From: Hyaloraphidium curvatum SAG 235-1
Lineage: Eukaryota > Fungi > Monoblepharomycota
Length of the DNA: 64,000 bases
Assembly: GCA_025558095.1 (NCBI GenBank)
Contig: JAIVFI010000015.1
Location: 186,001 to 250,000, forward strand
Reading direction: 5' to 3'
In this document: in pieces, positions 14,936 to 58,007 of the stretch
Position numbering within the stretch: the stretch's first letter is position 1
Layout: each line of letters opens with the position of its first letter
Made by a program: the position numbers and the translations under genes
The notes under the pieces: model-generated
Database searches by the model: none
Told to the model about the DNA's origin: nothing
Seen by the model: the letters and a program-made list of their open reading frames with translations, nothing else

Positions 14936-15985
14936 TCACTGCACGTAGATGACGGACGTGACCAGATCGCCGACCCCCGAGAGCCACATGCGCTTTCCTT
15001 CGTCGTACTCGAACCAGTCCTGTACCAGGGCCGCCTTCTGCCTCCGTTTGCGCTTCTTCTCGCTGCGCTTCATCGAGTTGATGATCGCCCACTCGCTCAT
15101 GTCCTCTAGCCCTCCCTCAGTGCCCTTGAATCCGACGAGCTCTCGGAAGCGGCGCGTGATGTCCCTCTTCTCCATTTCGCGGAAGAGCTCCGGCGAGGGC
15201 GGCGCCTTCGGGTTAAACTCCAGGAGCTCGGTCCGCAGAGAAAAGTGCACCGGAAGGCGGGAACCCTGCATGATGTCCTCGATCTTGTAGTGCGAGGGCT
15301 GCTTTCCGAGCATCTGCGTCTGCCGCGCCACCTGGTGCAGATCCAAGCCGGTAGCATCCGCAGGGCGCACAGGGCGATACAAAGTGACCGTCGGCAGCAA
15401 GATGCGCTCCATGTTGGGATCCTCCGCAGGGGCAGGGGGCTCGGTCTTTCGCGAGGGAGCCGGCCTTGGATACCGGGCAGGGGAGTCGTTGGGCGCGACG
15501 GCACCCCCGGATCGACTCCGAACGCGAGCCATCGTGTCCCTGTAGCGCATCACCAGCTCAATGTCCTGGTCGTCATCGCTCCCGCTGTCGGGCCGTACGT
15601 TCGATTGATGAAACTCCGCCGCCTCCCCGTGGTCCGTGCGAACCGAAGCGACCGCGGTCGTCATGCTGCCAGTGCCACCCGACTGCTGGCGTTGCTTCCT
15701 AACGATCAGGTCCGGAAACATGGTCTCCGCCGAGGACTGTTTGGAGGTAGCTGGAGAAAGAGGCACAGCCATGCGAGAGGCGGCCGACCGAGGAGGAGGG
15801 TCCGCCACCAAAGAGTCGGGAGGGCTCTCCACGACAGCTTGGTTCCCAGACTTTGTGCGCCCTAAAGACCGATGCGCTCGCGATGCGAGTCCGGCCTTCC
15901 CTTCTCCATGGGCGTCCTTGCCAAGAGAGCGGGAACCATCGCCGCGGACGAGCGACAGGAAGCTCTGCTTCGCGGCAGTGAACAT
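14936..15985 (-). CDS. Hypothetical protein (349 aa, disordered N-terminus)
   Basis: Single ATG-initiated ORF with coding-like composition; no family recognised. Confidence 0.6.
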   Translation of the reverse strand: MFTAAKQSFLSLVRGDGSRSLGKDAHGEGKAGLASRAHRSLGRTKSGNQAVVESPPDSLVADPPPRSAASRMAVPLSPATSKQSSAETMFPDLIVRKQRQQSGGTGSMTTAVASVRTDHGEAAEFHQSNVRPDSGSDDDQDIELVMRYRDTMARVRSRSGGAVAPNDSPARYPRPAPSRKTEPPAPAEDPNMERILLPTVTLYRPVRPADATGLDLHQVARQTQMLGKQPSHYKIEDIMQGSRLPVHFSLRTELLEFNPKAPPSPELFREMEKRDITRRFRELVGFKGTEGGLEDMSEWAIINSMKRSEKKRKRRQKAALVQDWFEYDEGKRMWLSGVGDLVTSVIYVQ

Positions 15986-16192
15986 ATCGCCAACTCGAGC
16001 GCAGCTTTATCCCCGAGCAGAGGACGTAGACGACTTCCGAAGGCTGCTAGAGAACCTCCTGGGTGTGAGTCCGGGGGCAGAACTCCGCGGATCTGAGCGC
16101 AGGCGCGGCGGCGACGCCGCGCGACGCGCTCTCGCCACAACAATCGACTGTCTCCCATCGAGAGCACCGCGAACGCGTCGCTAGCGGCAACG

Positions 16193-17501
16193 ATGGCGCC
16201 GAGCAACTCTCCTTCGACGACGCAGTACCCGGCCCCGCGCATCCGACTGCGGCAGATTGCCCTGGTGGCGCCATCTCTGCCGCTCGCCGCGGCCCAGCTC
16301 GAAGCGCTTCTTGGCAGCAAATCCGTCCGCTCCGACCCGGGCGTCAACAAGTTCGGACTGGACAACATCCTCGTGCCGGTCGGAGGCAACATCGTCGAGG
16401 TTGTGGCTCCGCAGGCCGGCAAGAAGGACAACGAAACCGCCGGAGGTCGCTTCATGCTGCGCTTGCGAGCCCCCAAGGGCGCTGGGTGAGCTGGACCGCT
16501 TCCTCTTTCTCTATTTGCCCACTGACTTCTTCGCCAGGTACATGGTGAGCTGGATCGCTTCGTCTTTCTCCCTTTGCCCGCTGAGGCTCGTCCTCAGGTG
16601 ATCACGCAGACCCCGGATCCCATCGCGGAAAGGGCACGCGTCACGTCCTTGACTGTGCCGACGAACATGCTGGCATCTGGCACCCACAAAGCTCTCGTGG
16701 ACAAGAAGGCTCAAAAGATCCGCCTTGTCGCTCAGATGGACCGCCCCGACTGGTGGGTTCCGACACGGCCAATCGCCGCGCAGACATTGATCACTCGGTC
16801 GAGCAGGGCCTACAGCCAGCTGCACCCGCTCGACACTCGGGGCGGCAACATCCTGGAGATGGAAGGAACGAAGCCGGGATCGATTGGGTATCTGACCGAC
16901 GAGATGGCACCGTGGTTCCCCGTTTCGCTCGAGAATCCCGACACCGGCAAGTACGAACCCACTTGGTGGGTACCGCTTGCATCCAAGATGGCCCAGGGGA
17001 AGCGGTTCGTCGGCGTTACGATCTCGGTGTCGCCGAAGGACGATCCTGCCGGCGCGCAGGCGGTCGCGGAGTGGTGGTCCACAATCACGGATCTGCCCGT
17101 CGAGAAGCGCGGCAACGCATGGACGATCATGCTTTCGTCGGGCGTGGAACTGCGGTTTGTGGAGAACTCTGTGCTTTTCAAGGGGGCAGAGGACAAGATC
17201 GAGCACCTGAAGGACAACACTGCCATTGCCGTCATCGACATCGGCTGCGTCGCGGGGTGAGCTGGTTGCCGAGCCAATCACCGGCATAATCTTGACACTG
17301 CCTTTTAGGACCGCCTCGGCGTCGGCCAGCCACTCGTCGGCATTGCATGCGCTGGAAACTACGGACAAAAGCACGTGGACCTCGGTCCCTGCTCTCGAAG
17401 GCGTACCGGCCATTCAGGCCCTCGGCACCTGGTGGCGCTTCGTCGATCTTCCGCAGGGGAGCACTCGGGGCCTGGCCACGAGCCAAAGCAGCAAGTTGTG
17501 A
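16193..17501 (+). CDS. VOC/glyoxalase-like protein of bacterial type, C-terminal PTS1 (SKL)
   Basis: IRLRQIALVA...DPGVNKFGLDNILVPVGGNIVEVVAP...TAGGRF...G/GYM/VITQ...QLHPLDTRGG. Introns 16486-16537, 16545-16597 and one starting near 17257. Ends QSSKL*. Confidence 0.8.
16486..16597 (+). repeat. Tandem pair of near-identical introns around a 7-nt exon
   Basis: 16486-16537 gtgagctggaccgcttcctctttctctatttgcccactgac... versus 16545-16597 gtgagctggatcgcttcgtctttctccctttgcccgctgag...; 35 of the first 40 nt are identical. Confidence 0.85.
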
Positions 17502-50547: not shown

Positions 50548-51276
50548 TCAGCGGAATGGAGCTACGGCCAGAACTTCATGAGTCCGGCTGTGCATGTAAG
50601 GCTCCGTTTCGAGAACCAAACGCACGTCGTCGACTCGAATTGAGCAGGGCGTCCATGCTCGCGCGGCCGCTTCCTCGAACCACATTCGGATGTCATCCCC
50701 GGATAAGGGCGAGGATGCCACGGCACTCCCGAACCTCAAGAACGTGCTATGAATGATCTGAGGGATCTTAAACGCAGCTTTCGCCAGTGTTTCGGGCGAC
50801 ATTCCCTGGCACCTCGGGATGAAATCGCGCTGGGCGTCTCCTATGACCTTCCGAAGTCTGGTAACCGAACCAGACGCGTCCTCTGCCCAAAAATAGCCCG
50901 CCGCAGGATCCAAAACTGGCCGAACAAAGACGATTTCGAACGGCTCCCGGGGCCAATCGGGATGTCGCGGAATGTACTCGGCGAACGCGCGAGTCCACGC
51001 GTCCTGGATCACTTCGCGCTCGCCCAGGTCCTCAAGAGAGTTGACGGTGAAAGGAACAGGCGAGGCCGCTGTGATGTGCATCGCATGATCCGGATAGAGG
51101 TGCACGAATGAAGGCAGGGCAGCTTCAAGCTCCGTAACGAGTTTCCGGTACGCCGACAAGAGCTTCTCCGGCGGCGAGGGGCCGAGGAGGTTGATGTTCA
51201 GGCCAAACACTGGCGCTGGAAGCCCGTTCCTCAAAGACTCCACGTAGGTGTCCGCCTTGAACGGAAAGGCTGCCAT
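50548..51276 (-). CDS. Putative 2H phosphoesterase-fold protein
   Basis: Intronless ORF with two HxT motifs (YP..AMHITAA and QIIHSTFLRF) about 100 aa apart. Confidence 0.6.
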   Translation of the reverse strand: MAAFPFKADTYVESLRNGLPAPVFGLNINLLGPSPPEKLLSAYRKLVTELEAALPSFVHLYPDHAMHITAASPVPFTVNSLEDLGEREVIQDAWTRAFAEYIPRHPDWPREPFEIVFVRPVLDPAAGYFWAEDASGSVTRLRKVIGDAQRDFIPRCQGMSPETLAKAAFKIPQIIHSTFLRFGSAVASSPLSGDDIRMWFEEAAARAWTPCSIRVDDVRLVLETEPYMHSRTHEVLAVAPFR

Positions 51277-51444
51277 GATTGCAGCGCATGTGGTACGCCT
51301 GTCCCCCACCCCCGGCGCAATGATGGAATCGTGCAGTCGCTGCTCGTCCGCGTACGCTGGAACAGCGCACCCTAAGGCGAATCAGATCCTCCATTTCCCC
51401 GAAGTCACAGCACTCTCATCTACATCTTATCCATGTGCCAGAGC

Positions 51445-54400
51445 TCACTTCTGCTCGCCCACGCCTGGCGAGGAGCCAGAGGGTTCCTCTGCGATAAGTG
51501 CCGATTCCTCCGCAATCGGCACGACCGCAGCATCTGCAGTGTCCGCAACAGCATCCCGCTCGCCCCCCACAGCCGCCGGCTTTTCGCTGTCCGCTGTCCC
51601 CTGCTCCAACGCAGCTGCCTCGCGTGCTGCCTCTGCCTTCCGTTCCTTCCGTCGCGCGAAATACCACATGACAAACCAGGCCAACAATACGATAGCCCAG
51701 TAGCCAAAGTAGGTGCAGACGGTAGCCACGGTACCGACAGCCCGCCAGCCAACCAGCGCCTGCAAAGACGAGACGCGTCATTCAGACGCGGTCAACTGGA
51801 TACGCAGAATGCCGACTCACGTTCATGATCTGGAAGAACGCATTGCTCTCTTCCGAGCAGCAGGCCGTCAGGTCCCACAGGACTTGCGAGCTTTCCGGAA
51901 GCTCCGGAACGAACTCCTTGTCGGCCATGGCAATTGTCCAGGTTATGTCGGGCTGCGTCGCATTCGCTTTCACGTGGTACGAAACCATCATGCCGGCGTG
52001 GATGTGGTCGGAAACATGGCAACTAGGCGTTCCGTCAATTATCTGCGCATTGAGGCGCGGACCGTCGCGATCACTCACTGGAACAGCCACTGCCCGGGTT
52101 CGTTGGCCGTCATGGTGGCAACATGGAAGCTCGCCGGAAGGAGGGGGATAACATCGGTCCGGCGCGAGGTGCCGGCCTCCACGAGCGTGTTGCCGTGCCA
52201 GTGTGCTGCATGAGCACGGTGGTCAGTTGGCATCGTCAGCAGCAATGGTGAAGTACCCACCGGTGTGCAGGTCGACCTCATTGCCAAACGCGAACGTCAT
52301 CCATCGTACCCGCTGACCAACGACCATTTCCAGCCCGTCGAGGTTGTTGTACATTCTCCCGTTGATCGAGTGCATTAAGTTCGACTCGATGAACTCATCC
52401 GCCTCCCAGACGGACGGGTCGTTGAGGACTTCGGGGGCGTACTTGGCAATGTTGTGCTCAAGCATGAGAGACTGGTTCTCGTCCGCCACCATCAGCGCCA
52501 CGGCGTACTCCCGATCGACGTCAGTGGGCTTGTCGGTCGTCTTGTCCAGAGTTCCAGGAGCGTAGACAATGAGGGGACCCAACATGCCTGAACCAAGCAA
52601 GAATCGTCATCGGTTGAACTGCACTGTGAAGTCATGCAGACCCACCAGTAAAGATGTCACGGACCTCGTGCACGTGCGAATGGTAGGCCCAGAGCACGGC
52701 GTTGCCGTCTCCCGCTGCAGGACCCGAGGTATCGCGGGCGACCCAGGTGTACACGTAGGTGGCGTTCGGCTCGATCCGGTTGCCAATGTCGTTCCATTCA
52801 ACCGTCGCTCCTTCCGACTCCATGACGTACTGGAGACCATGCGGGTGCATCGACGTGATGTTCGGCGACCGGTTGAGAAAGTTGATCTGGTTTTGGGAAA
52901 ACGGTCAGCAAAGAGCGGATTCGGGGGGTTCGCGAACACACCTTGACGATGTCGCCGACCTCGGCACGGATCACAGGTCCAAGGAAACCGAGCCACGGGC
53001 CCTCCTGCGCCTTCTTCCGCGTGAAGGAAGCGTCCTCGTACTCGACAAACATGATCCTGTCGTACACCGCCCCAATGCGACCCTCGCCGTGCAGGGTGAA
53101 TACGCCCGCTCCTTCAGGATCCCGAATGAAAGGAACTCCGTTGATGTGGTTGTAGCCCGACGGCGCATAGTCCCAAGTGACGATTTCGGCAGCGATGTAG
53201 TAGGTTCTTTGGGCGCACGAGGACGGCGCGGGCGACGAAGCGTTGACGGCCGGGCACAACGAGGACTCGACAACCTCGCGAAGCGGCGGCGACCAAGCAA
53301 CTTGCACCGATTCCTCCTGCCGTTCGTGGAGCTGCGGCGAGGAAACGTCGCGCACCCTGAGTGCCTTCCACGTGTTGGCAGGCGACTCGGCCACAGTCAG
53401 GTTCTGCGGTGCGTTCGCGTCCCACTCGGCGTAAGCAGCCTCGTTGTTTTTGATCGACACGATCTCCTCGAACTCGTGTGCCGCTCCTGCAGCTAGACCT
53501 GCGGCGATAAAGAACAGGAATATCGCCTTGTTGCCGCGTTGTTAGCGCCACTCATGGATGCCCGAAACGGCACCTACCGAAATGAGAAGGAAAAGCTGCA
53601 GTCTGAAGTGCCTCGCGCTCCGGAAAATGATGTAGCCGACGGCAAAGCCCAGGATGATGCCCGTCACACCCGGCAGGATCATGGCAAAGGGTTCGCCCTG
53701 ACCGACGCCGGCGAGAAAAATGACAGACTCCAACCCCTCGCGCAGCACGACGGTGAAAGCGATCAAAAACATGGCATAGGGCCTCGTGCTGATCCCGCCC
53801 CGGTAATCGGGGAGGTTCTCCGACGGGACAGCGGTCGTCCCGTCCGAGGAAAGAGAGCTCCGAGCTTGGGTTTCCGGGTCGACCTTGATGCCAACAGCTC
53901 CGTCGGCCGTGGTGACGACAGTGGTAGAGCCTCCGGTAGCGAGAGCCACCTTGTCGTCCGCATCCGCTACAGGCTCCTTGACGGTCGCCTTGCCCTTCTC
54001 GACGACGGCGGCGTCCTTCTCGGCCTGCAAAGCGAGCTTGGCCTCGAGCTTCTCCTCCCAGTGTTGGTACCAGTTCTTGGCCCGGAGCATGGCAAATGCC
54101 ATCCAGGTAATCAGAACGACGGCAATCGTCTTCATGATTCCCTCCCAGAGCGCCTCCATGCTCCCAAAGACGTCCGTCTTGAGCACATAAAACACGACAC
54201 AGAACACCACTCCAATGATGACGGAAATGCCCAACCCGGTGCCCGAACCCAGCCAGACCTGCCGCCGTAGGCGGGCGGCTGTGACCGGCTCATGAGGCAG
54301 CGTCTTCTTGATGTAGTTCAGGAGCACCCCGACGATGATGGCCGCCTCGAGGGTCTCGCGGAACAGAACTGAAAAGCGGGCGCCACGTCAGAAAGTCGTG

Positions 54401-54461
54401 GGAGCCGGCGCGGCGTGGCGGGCCCACTGAAGAACGCGGCTATGTTGAACAAATACACCAT
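51445..54461 (-). CDS. FTR1: Ftr1-type iron permease with a two-domain ceruloplasmin-like multicopper oxidase inserted in extracellular loop 6 (single-chain ferroxidase-permease, ~873 aa)
   Basis: Exons 54461-54428, 54368-53578, 53526-52942, 52886-52646, 52587-52261, 52205-52079, 52022-51821 and 51759-51445 total 2622 nt and stay in frame. Ftr1 motifs: RETLE, REGLE, IAAGL..AHEFE, LWDLTACC, ALVGW..TVCTYFGYW. MCO motifs: YYIAA..WDYAP, GFLGPVIRAEVGD, MHPHG, YHSH, HSINGR, HTAHWHG, WLFHCHVSDHIHAGM. Confidence 0.88.
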
Positions 54462-55037
54462 CGTGGCCCGCCTCCGTACTCGAAGGGCACGCTTTGAGAC
54501 CAATTGTGGCGCAAAAGACGGCGAGAGACCCGCCGGAACGAAAAGCGAGCGGGATGCACAGGGAAGAAAGCGGGGGTCAGCGGAAGTGGCGAACCCGCAC
54601 AAAGCGGCGGGATCCGCCCTCTCACCGGCCGTCTGGATGCCGAGGGCTCGGGACAGCCCTTCGGAACGGTCGCGGGGCGACGGCGAGGCCCTCTGGCCCG
54701 GGCGTGTCGCGAGTTTGTGCGGCCGTCGGAACCTTGGATGAGCAATTCCCAAGCGCTGGGAACCCAACGGCCTGGCTGAGCCTCCTCCACCTCGGAACTC
54801 GGAAGCGATCCCGGACCCAATCAGTTCCTATCGAATGCTAGAAAACAGCTGGTCTGACGCCGAAGGTCTGGATGCGTTCTGGCCCGGCTACGGAGCGCCA
54901 AGGAGGGATGACAACCATAGCTCTCCAAAACCCAGGTGCCATTGCGCCGGGAGCGTCGGGCGTCGGGCAAGTTCGGCCAACCCAGGCTTTCGAGAGGCAA
55001 ACTGGTAGTTATCACCACAGGAACGATACAAAGCAGG

Positions 55038-55972
55038 CTACATCAACTGATCTATCTTCCCCTTTCGTCTCGCAGCATACTAGGTTGATGTGGGCGTGAG
55101 CTCAAAGGACGGATGTTGAACGAAGGCAACTCACGGCATCATAGTTCGGTAGTTTCACGATGTCTGACTCCGTCATTTGCGGGTTCCGGGAAAGATCCAC
55201 CTGGGCGACCGGAGTCTTCAAAAAGATCTCGCCGGGAAACGTCCGAAGGCCGTTGCCCGCTAGCCTCAAGATTTTGAGACGCGGGAGCTCGCTCAGCGTC
55301 GCAGGCACGTCTGTGAGCTGGTTGTCGTCCAGAACAAGTTCTTCCAAAGAGGGCATGCCGCCCAGCGTGAGCGGGATGGAACGCAGCACGTTCTTCGACA
55401 CATCGAGCTTTATGAGCTGTCGGAGCGCGCCAATCTCGATCGGCAGGGAGGTCAGCTTGTTGGAAGAAAGGTTCAACGTCCGCAAGTTGCCGAGCGAAGC
55501 AATCTCGGGCGGGATCGAGGTCAGCTGGTTCGCGGCCAGCTGGAGGTTCTCAAGCTTGGACAACCGGAACAGTTGCGGCGGAAGGGAAGTGAGCTCGTTT
55601 GCTGGCACACAAATTAGCCGCGGAGACTTGGAACGGCCGCGAGCTCCCACAGGAGAAGTTCAGAAGCTTTAATGAGACGAAGAGAGCGATTTCCGGAGGA
55701 ATGGCGCTGAATCTGTCCTTTCGCCATCAGAAACGCGCCGCACAGGACCGAATCGAATGCCCACTTGTTAACGCTGAGGTCGAATGACCGAATCTGGTCC
55801 ACGGGCGCGTCCTGTGTGAACTTCTTTGGTATCTCTTTCAGCTTCGCGTTTGTGAGGGTCAGGACCCCAGTCTTGGTAGACCGCTCCACGCGAGTCCTGC
55901 AGCAAACGCGTTGACGCTTCCATGCGTCGTTCCTGTGGCTTAAGCCCACGTTTTTGACTGCTTCTGCCCCAT
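55038..55972 (-). CDS. LRRC57: Leucine-rich repeat protein, LRRC57-like, N-terminal Gly (possible myristoylation)
   Basis: MGQKQSK../RVERSTKTGVLTL..LKEIP, tandem LxxLxLxxNxLxxLPxxI repeats, last exon YAARRKGKIDQLM*. Several introns. Confidence 0.7.
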
Positions 55973-56189
55973 TCTGAGCAGTGTTTGATGCGTGCGGATC
56001 GACATCTCATCAACGCGGGCCCCGCCCGCGGCCGGCGGCAAAATACCGCCCGCTCCCGATCCGATTCGGTTGACACTCGCTGAAACCGCCTGCACGGGGC
56101 TCACCGACCCGGCTCGCTTGATCCGGCGACGACGCGGCCGAAGCTGACGTGCGCGCTGTCGTCGACGCGTCCGCGATCCGGTAGCCGAA

Positions 56190-58007
56190 ATGACTCTCCA
56201 TACGGCTTGGACCTTCGTCCTCGCGGCGCTGGTTGCAGGACCTCTACTGTTATTTGCCTTCAAGGGGGTTCGCCTCGTCGTTTCGAACCTTCTCGCTCGC
56301 CGCGCTCTTGAATATGCCGGCTTCGTGGTGCCTCGGACGCCCGGTTTCTCGTACTTGAAAGGCCACCTGGACCTCTTCATCCGATGCACCGGCCAGGTGT
56401 CGGCCGTGATAATGTGGCTCCGAGCAAACATGCCGGAACTCCAGGAGAAGACTTTCTCCATGTATTTGAGCTTCTTCTTCACGATGATCGTGTCGACCGA
56501 TCCCGATGTCGCCTACCAGGTGCTCCACAAGAAGAACTACGACAAGCAGGACTACGAGACCATCCGTGACGTTGTCGGCAACAGCCTCTTGACGGCCAAC
56601 GGCGAGCCGTGGGCGCGGAAGAGGCGGATTATGAACCACGGGTTCAAGCCGGAGATGATCAAGTCGATGGTTCCGACCTTTGCTCACTACGCACGCCTCA
56701 TGTGCGACATGATCGAACGGGACCTCAGGTCGCGTCCTGAAGGGCCGCAGTCGGCCTGGATCGACATGGCCGAGGTCTTTTCCAAAGCTACCCTGGACAT
56801 CATCGGGGACGTTGCCTTTGGCCACAAGGTCTGTTGATTGCTTGAAACGGGGCTTCGTGGGCGCTGAACAACTCTGTCGGTCTCAGTTCAACTTCACCAT
56901 TTCCCCCGTCAACGACGCCAGGGTCTCGAGCATCAAAGAGATGGTTTACATGTCCCTGTCGGAGCCCGCGAAGCTCCTATCCAACCCGTTGCGGATGATA
57001 ACACACCCCAGGCGGACCTACCAGTACTACCGCCACCTTCGCAAGTTCAAAGCCCTGGGAATGGACATCGTTCGCCGCGCGCGAACACGGGCCGAGGCGT
57101 TGGCTCGCGCAGATTCCAAGGACGCCGGTGACAGCATCCTTGGCCTCATCCTCAAGATGGGCACCCTGAGCGAGGACGACAAGCTCTCGGAGTCGGATCT
57201 GCTTGACGAGATCATGACCTTCCTCGTCGCAGGGTATGCTTGCGACCTCTTTGCAACGTACTGTAGCTAAAGAGCCCGCCCGCAGCCACGAGACCACGGC
57301 GGGAACGGCGTCGTTTGCCCTCCTCTACCTTGCCAAGCACCCGGATTGCCTGGCAAAGGCGGTTGCCGAGGTCGACTCGATTCTCCTCACGCGCGACGCA
57401 CCTTGCGGGTACGAGGAGCAGCACCGCATGGATTACTTGCTCGCGGTGTTTCGCGAGGTTTTGCGGCTTCATCCCGTCGCTCCGGCGGCCATGCGGATTG
57501 CACCTGCGGGCGAAATCATCGACGGCAAAGTTTTGAAGAGACCGACGCCGGTCTTTATTCCGTACGTGCACTTTTCCACACATGACGCCCTCTCACCACA
57601 TCCCTCTATGACGTCTAACTATTCACAGTTACGTCGGCCTCCATCGGAATCGAGAACTTTGGGGCGCAGACGCTGACGAGTTCAGACCGGAGCGCTGGCT
57701 CGGAGCGAGCCCGATCAAGCATCCAATGGCATATGTGCCCTTCTCCAACGGCCCGCGCATCTGCATCGGCAAGGATCTCGCCATGCTCGAGTTCAGGGTG
57801 CTCATGGCGACCTTCTTGCGGCGGTTTCGCTGGCGCATACCGCGAGACCTCGCGTACCGCGACGACGTCCGCGACGGGGATCCCGACTGTTCCGCGGAAC
57901 CGACAGACCGCGCCGCTCTCCCGCCGGGGTTCGAGGTCGCATACAACGAGCAGATCACGCAACGGCCGCGGGAATGCGTCGTGGAGATCCTCGGGCTCCG
58001 AGATTGA
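56190..58007 (+). CDS. Cytochrome P450
   Basis: N-terminal TM anchor, WARKRR, TFLVAG/HETT (I-helix), EVLR, FRPERW, PFSNGPRICIG (heme-binding Cys). Three introns. Confidence 0.95.

Follow-up and report, generated by a model that had tools for sequence, protein, structure and literature searches.

In yeast, Fe3+ is channelled from the oxidase Fet3 to the permease Ftr1 via loop 6 (PMC11817551). According to a 2025 review there is no structure of a ferroxidase–permease complex, and its stoichiometry and contacts are unknown (PMC11817551). Fet3 is a three-domain laccase-type enzyme on a separate chain. In Chlamydomonas, Ftr1 is paired with FOX1, a separate six-domain protein of the ceruloplasmin-related multicopper ferroxidases (PMC3759009, PMC3600357). 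Two-domain oxidases must form homotrimers to be active, the trinuclear cluster lying between protomers (PMC3738974, PMC13151041), and a secreted fungal two-domain ceruloplasmin homologue, Fusarium FOYG_17127, has been modelled as a trimer (PMC6994591). Natural fusions of Ftr1 with a soluble, periplasmic iron-handling domain are found in bacteria (EfeU/Ftr1, e.g. PF03239+PF09375), but there the partner is not a multicopper oxidase. The open-access literature searched, which leaves out the majority of subscription journals, yielded no description of a natural Ftr1–oxidase fusion, and in public records this combination of domains goes unremarked.

The window analysed here is a 64,000-nucleotide stretch of the genome of the fungus Hyaloraphidium curvatum SAG 235-1. 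In it, one mRNA encodes a seven-transmembrane (7-TM) Ftr1 whose final extracytosolic loop bears one ceruloplasmin A-unit, the topology being predicted. As in yeast Fet3–Ftr1, the permease has two REXXE motifs and a TM3 glutamate, the oxidase is located at loop 6 and reductases are present (four ferric-reductase domain matches in the genome); unlike the yeast pair, there is one chain rather than two, no literal DXXE motif in loop 6, and a trimer is predicted. The partnership of Ftr1 with a ceruloplasmin-related oxidase resembles that of Chlamydomonas, but a single domain pair sits inside the permease. Compared with ceruloplasmin and hephaestin, identity is about 40% to each repeat and the copper ligands of domains 1 and 6 are kept, as is the E935/H940/D1025/E272 iron site of ceruloplasmin, including the Glu from another even domain; however, there is one repeat instead of three (not six domains), and the partner belongs to an importer family, whereas the animal proteins are linked to export by ferroportin. 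The type B oxidases SLAC and CjMCO likewise have two domains, with type 1 copper confined to domain 2 and the cluster His residues split 4+4, but the insert resembles ceruloplasmin far more than SLAC, possesses a complete iron site and is embedded in a transporter. Within the literature searched, the parts and the pathway are known, while the single-chain, inserted, predicted-trimer build is not described.

Splicing by script reproduced an eight-exon minus-strand model of 2622 nt and 873 aa with a single terminal stop. Introns 1–7 (59, 51, 55, 58, 55, 56 and 61 nt) are all GT–AG. In RNA run X1 (Logan contigs), one 2,685-nt contig extending from the 5′ UTR to 32 nt beyond the stop joins all seven with zero mismatches, and five of the seven joints were seen in run X2, a freshwater polyA RNA sample from a separate 2025 study. 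Run X1 may derive from the source organism itself, and a contig does not amount to a long read; the case for a real fusion therefore rests more on the orthologues described below. The 300 nt preceding the start codon contain no upstream ATG, and the N-terminus lacks a signal peptide, as in related Ftr1 proteins. The features are listed below in window coordinates.

54492–54625, minus strand: 5′ UTR intron, 134 nt, GT–AG (sequence; joint in runs X1 and X2)
54428–54461, minus strand: exon 1, coding part, aa 1–11 (sequence, RNA joints)
53578–54368, minus strand: exon 2, aa 12–275, Ftr1 TM1–TM5 and the beginning of TM6 (Pfam FTR1, E = 1.4e-39; conservation)
54360–54346, minus strand: RETLE motif in exon 2 (sequence coordinates)
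54144–54142, minus strand: codon of TM3 Glu87 in exon 2 (sequence coordinates)
53742–53728, minus strand: REGLE motif in exon 2 (sequence coordinates)
52942–53526, minus strand: exon 3, aa 276–470, end of TM6, linker and first part of oxidase domain 1
53463–53257, minus strand: 70-aa linker from TM6 to the oxidase, in exon 3
51968–53214, minus strand: complete inserted two-domain (type B) ceruloplasmin-type oxidase, aa 380–720 (phmmer, orthologue model)
52646–52886, minus strand: exon 4, cluster His residues of oxidase domain 1 (sequence, site conservation)
52847–52839, minus strand: trinuclear-cluster His484/486 in exon 4
52682–52674, minus strand: trinuclear-cluster His539/541 in exon 4
52261–52587, minus strand: exon 5, oxidase domain 2, with iron ligands Glu618, His623 and Glu654 and type 1 His658 (alignment to 1KCW; PMC3738974)
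52079–52205, minus strand: exon 6, His661/663 (type 2/3 copper) and His702 (sequence, site conservation)
51821–52022, minus strand: exon 7, Cys703, His704, Asp707, His708 and Met713, then the oxidase end (51968)
51904–51890, minus strand: ELPES in the resumed loop 6, exon 7
51877–51857, minus strand: W-x5-CC in the resumed loop 6, exon 7
51445–51759, minus strand: exon 8, TM7 (about aa 781–803), basic stop-transfer run and 70-aa cytosolic tail

The first fusion junction lies inside exon 3, which also encodes the pair Cys366/Cys379, and full-length matches span it in P0002, P0004, P0017 and P0027 (alignment A1). The second lies inside exon 7, where a 28-aa linker follows the oxidase before Ftr1 loop 6 resumes. 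A sequence-only reading of the locus had claimed eight exons with GT–AG introns of 51–61 nt, a 2622-nt coding sequence of ~873 aa with the motifs it quoted, both domain junctions within uninterrupted exons and a single transcript, all of which held; its list of seven introns was incomplete, since an eighth is present in the 5′ UTR. The corresponding NCBI protein, KAI9022466.1 ('Cupredoxin', 781 aa), matches exon 3 at 100% but reads into intron 7 and ends without exon 8 and TM7. Searches were run with single exons or with the database proteins that these returned, not with the joined 873-aa model. GC3 is 0.78 both in the insert and in the N-terminal permease part, giving no sign of recent transfer. 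GATA sites occur at chance level, and the Rfam and tRNA searches returned no match.

On KAI9022466.1, Pfam FTR1 matches residues 8–300 above the cut-off (166.9 bits), covering only profile positions 3–215 of 284. The missing Ftr1 end comes after the oxidase, in exons 7–8, where 26 aa match the unfused Ftr1 P0294 at 58% identity and 59 aa at 41%. Hydropathy, positive-inside counts of basic residues and the orthologue model predict an N-out, C-in protein of seven helices with loop 6 outside. This loop is 489 aa long and carries all seven N-glycosylation sequons, each of them in the insert region. The REXXE motifs of TM1 (Arg15–Glu19) and TM4 (Arg221–Glu225) and the TM3 residue Glu87, equated with yeast Glu89 by position, are present and conserved. 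Most intact relatives, though not L020, have an acidic stretch of the E-x-P-E type ahead of the W-CC motif. A fold search with the Ftr1 part gave generic helical-transporter matches only (best Z = 11.8, rmsd 4.3) and the PDB holds no sequence relative of Ftr1; there is no Ftr1 structure in support of its ability to trimerize.

The insert contains exactly two cupredoxin domains according to Pfam, phmmer and structure superposition (Cu-oxidase_3 at 456–561 and Cu-oxidase_2 at 624–720 of KAI9022466.1). Its alignments to the three single repeats of ceruloplasmin each run over the full length (214–225 bits in phmmer), whereas those to small laccases are weak (at most 69 bits). In the AlphaFold2 model of the Gonapodya orthologue both parts fold (mean pLDDT 83.7, pTM 0.58). 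The oxidase superposes on rat ceruloplasmin 343–696 as one contiguous domain pair (Z = 45.2, rmsd 1.7 Å, 347 residues), compared with Z = 15.4 for Fet3. With a pTM of 0.58, the orientation of the head relative to the membrane is unresolved and the linkers are of low confidence. The ESM Atlas returned no match by features and, by shape, nothing but oxidase clusters.

Domain 1 carries four cluster histidines (His484, His486, His539 and His541) and no Cys in its core, and therefore has no type 1 copper. Domain 2 provides the other four (His661, His663, His702 and His704) together with the type 1 site His658/Cys703/His708/Met713. By sequence, the insert is a type B two-domain oxidase with type 1 copper only in domain 2 and eight cluster histidines split 4+4. 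Glu618, His623, Asp707 and Glu654 align with ceruloplasmin Glu935, His940, Asp1025 and Glu272/Glu971 (alignment to 1KCW). In the mixed site alignment A3, no copper or iron ligand is missing from any fusion covering the position. By sequence, all 11 copper ligands, the axial Met, all four ceruloplasmin iron ligands and the permease residues are conserved across genera, the permease of P0293 excepted.

The order Ftr1(TM1–6)–oxidase–Ftr1(loop 6/TM7) recurs in Gonapodya, Cladochytrium and Nowakowskiella, and also in five environmental contigs from metagenomes or runs (P0002, P0004, P0027, P0151 and P0161), and the fusion is conserved in four fungal genera, including Hyaloraphidium. Both REXXE motifs and the copper and iron ligands are retained wherever the sequences reach, except for the permease motifs of P0293. 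Public gene models truncate or misname every fusion found. That of Gonapodya sp. JEL0774 (P0152) extends into a bestrophin-like segment, and that of Cladochytrium replicatum (KAI8815092.1) lacks TM1–5, although the missing exons are present in its DNA. Word-based searches, with only 8000 candidates scored, found no fusion in other fungi, which does not show absence; the 17 loci returned by a scan of metagenome DNA all lacked an Ftr1 part, and oxidase searches with full-length candidates were swamped by animal hephaestins.

Nowakowskiella sp. JEL0078 has two fusion copies, arranged in tandem (L040:29–450 and L040:1621–4034). The downstream copy, P0293, retains all copper and iron ligands, but neither REXXE motif nor the TM3 Glu remains. 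Judged from sequence alone, it is likely to be an oxidase-only, membrane-anchored copy. Separately, P0307 (JGI, 713 aa, on a 3.6-kb contig) has a signal-like N-terminus, a complete Ftr1 (29–331), a long tail, an additional hydrophobic helix (482–500) and, after these, 88 aa that match the start of a ceruloplasmin-type oxidase (43% identity, E = 3e-17). It could represent a tandem fusion that arose independently, for a second time, in another eukaryote, or else a gene-calling artefact.

The closest unfused Ftr1 (55% identity) is that of Quaeritorhiza haematococci, where it stands head-to-head (divergent) with the gene of an unfused two-domain oxidase that resembles the fused type and has a signal peptide, 723 bp lying between the genes (L042:8125–11671). 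In the oxidase tree (midpoint root, partial fusions excluded), seven fused units form one clade (99/95) nested in a larger group (96/92) of free two-domain oxidases. Most of this group is from early fungi; it draws on Paraphysoderma, Quaeritorhiza, Thamnocephalis, Tribonema and a single metagenome. The permease tree unites the fusions, the Quaeritorhiza genes and the plain Hyaloraphidium paralogue in one clade (100/99) without internal resolution; it does not establish a permease clade of fusions alone, and such a clade is not rejected either (p-AU = 0.139). The simplest reading, which we infer, is that the fusion arose by one insertion between two linked genes. The gene of a free, secreted two-domain oxidase would have been inserted into a neighbouring, co-regulated Ftr1 gene, and the Quaeritorhiza arrangement would be the pre-fusion state still visible. 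The fusion may be old and have been lost in some lineages, or it may have been transferred from one aquatic fungus to another. Among the free ceruloplasmin-type oxidases from Paraphysoderma, Thamnocephalis and the alga Tribonema (P0073, P0120 and P0147), the Paraphysoderma one has a C-terminal hydrophobic segment.

The Hyaloraphidium genome holds a single copy of the fusion-type oxidase. Its one other Ftr1, without insert (398 aa, contig C30, about 15510–16950, minus strand, L009), belongs to the permease clade of the fusions and has an intron at about the insert position; no further fusion-type oxidase is found near it or elsewhere in the genome. This paralogue may have lost the insert or may borrow the oxidase of the fusion. 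Among the five other oxidase loci, two were tested and match laccases better than Fet3, and by eye the remaining three are two CotA-like and one laccase-like. The genome shows no clear standalone Fet3; its absence is likely but not proven by exon-by-exon searches.

We favour, with a probability of roughly 0.66, the reading that the fusion is a single-gene ferroxidase–permease for reductive iron uptake; activity, trimer, channelling, localization and iron regulation are all inferred. Two-domain oxidases need an inter-chain cluster and the fourth iron ligand of ceruloplasmin is contributed by a different repeat, from which we infer that both sites are inter-chain in the fusion. It is likely, by inference from these enzymes and without trimer data, that the protein works as a homotrimer. 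In an assembly of three chains, each trinuclear O2-reducing cluster would be made up by domain 1 of one chain and domain 2 of its neighbour, and Glu654 would complete the iron site of the adjacent chain, giving a ceruloplasmin-like three-fold head atop three permeases. Surface reductases would supply Fe2+, which would be oxidized by type 1 copper (three sites in the trimeric head), and Fe3+ would move through acidic loop-6 residues to the REXXE channel by analogy with yeast Fet3–Ftr1. The iron sites of ceruloplasmin open onto a single face of its head. Insertion at the yeast hand-off loop supports a coupled oxidase and permease, and conservation in four genera together with the unfused Quaeritorhiza pair lends independent support.

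The sequence-only reading had proposed a ceruloplasmin-type rather than Fet3-type oxidase placed outside in Ftr1 loop 6, and both points held, the position by topology prediction. Its 'complete' multicopper oxidase has to be amended to one ceruloplasmin A-unit of two cupredoxin domains, not three or six. Its 'self-contained' chain has to be amended as well, as a two-domain oxidase forms the oxygen-reducing cluster between chains (PMC3738974, PMC13151041). Iron oxidation and iron import by the fusion remain an inference from sequence and analogy.

The rival that survives best, though we consider it unlikely, is that the oxidase is tethered without channelling: the permease would import alone and the oxidase would serve nearby redox control (oxidation of Cu+, Mn2+ or excess Fe2+). 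In its favour, and as a caveat to the coupled reading, RiFTR1, a fungal Ftr1, works without a ferroxidase (PMC11836134) and the fusion has no literal DXXE; the linkers are flexible, the pTM of the model is 0.58, and metallo-oxidases also oxidize Cu+ and Mn2+. Against it stand the four conserved iron ligands, the position of the insert at a known hand-off loop and the head-to-head arrangement of the unfused genes.

Also improbable is a polyprotein, in which a Kex2-type cut in the linker between TM6 and the oxidase would yield a TM1–6 chain and an oxidase–TM7 chain of Fet3-like topology that stay associated and perform the chemistry of the main reading. KR or RR occurs in the linker of nine of ten fusions, in several at similar places. 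However, each is expected by chance in 15–66% of shuffles, and the Hyaloraphidium linker lacks both, containing only ER-Q. A conserved protease site was rejected as not above chance.

Equally, we doubt a vacuolar or endosomal location. Fet5–Fth1 provides the analogy for vacuolar iron mobilization. The fusion would mobilize stored iron by the same chemistry, with the plain C30 paralogue at the surface. The genome has two Ftr1 genes and topology cannot separate lumen from outside, but no sorting signal was identified and the paralogue has no fusion-type oxidase of its own. An assembly, splicing or gene-modelling artefact joining two genes is all but excluded by junctions within exons, spliced RNA, occurrence in four genera and a single unbroken ORF from TM1 to oxidase domain 2 in contig L019.

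A bolder version of the coupled reading, for which we see the odds as evenly balanced, is an obligate homotrimeric oxidase–transporter with three Ftr1 channels under a head of three identical domain pairs. If true, it would be the first natural single-chain ferroxidase–permease, and would present, in working form and already as a ferroxidase, the two-domain unit from which ceruloplasmin is proposed to descend. Permease-dead copies such as P0293 might conceivably join such trimers as oxidase-only subunits. The one-gene version has a fixed 1:1 stoichiometry, and cryo-EM could be aimed directly at the three-fold assembly of 280 kDa that is predicted for it; it offers a natural single-gene model for iron passage from oxidase to channel that can be probed by point mutants. 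It connects the hypothetical two-domain ceruloplasmin ancestor (PMC3600357) with iron transport, and means that some early, water-dwelling fungi use a ceruloplasmin-type rather than a Fet3-type oxidase.

Some observations concern the neighbourhood of the fusion gene. Between it and the next gene lies a 54-bp element (window 51328–51381), not a tRNA and without Rfam match, of which at least 30 more copies occur genome-wide at 85–100% identity. The downstream ORF (window 50548–51273, minus strand, about 241 aa) has no Pfam match but shows two His-x-Thr/Ser-like motifs, and from sequence alone could be a 2H phosphoesterase. The upstream LRR gene (window 55102–58004) is syntenic in two environmental relatives (L019 and L021), and a P450 gene is likewise syntenic in L019.
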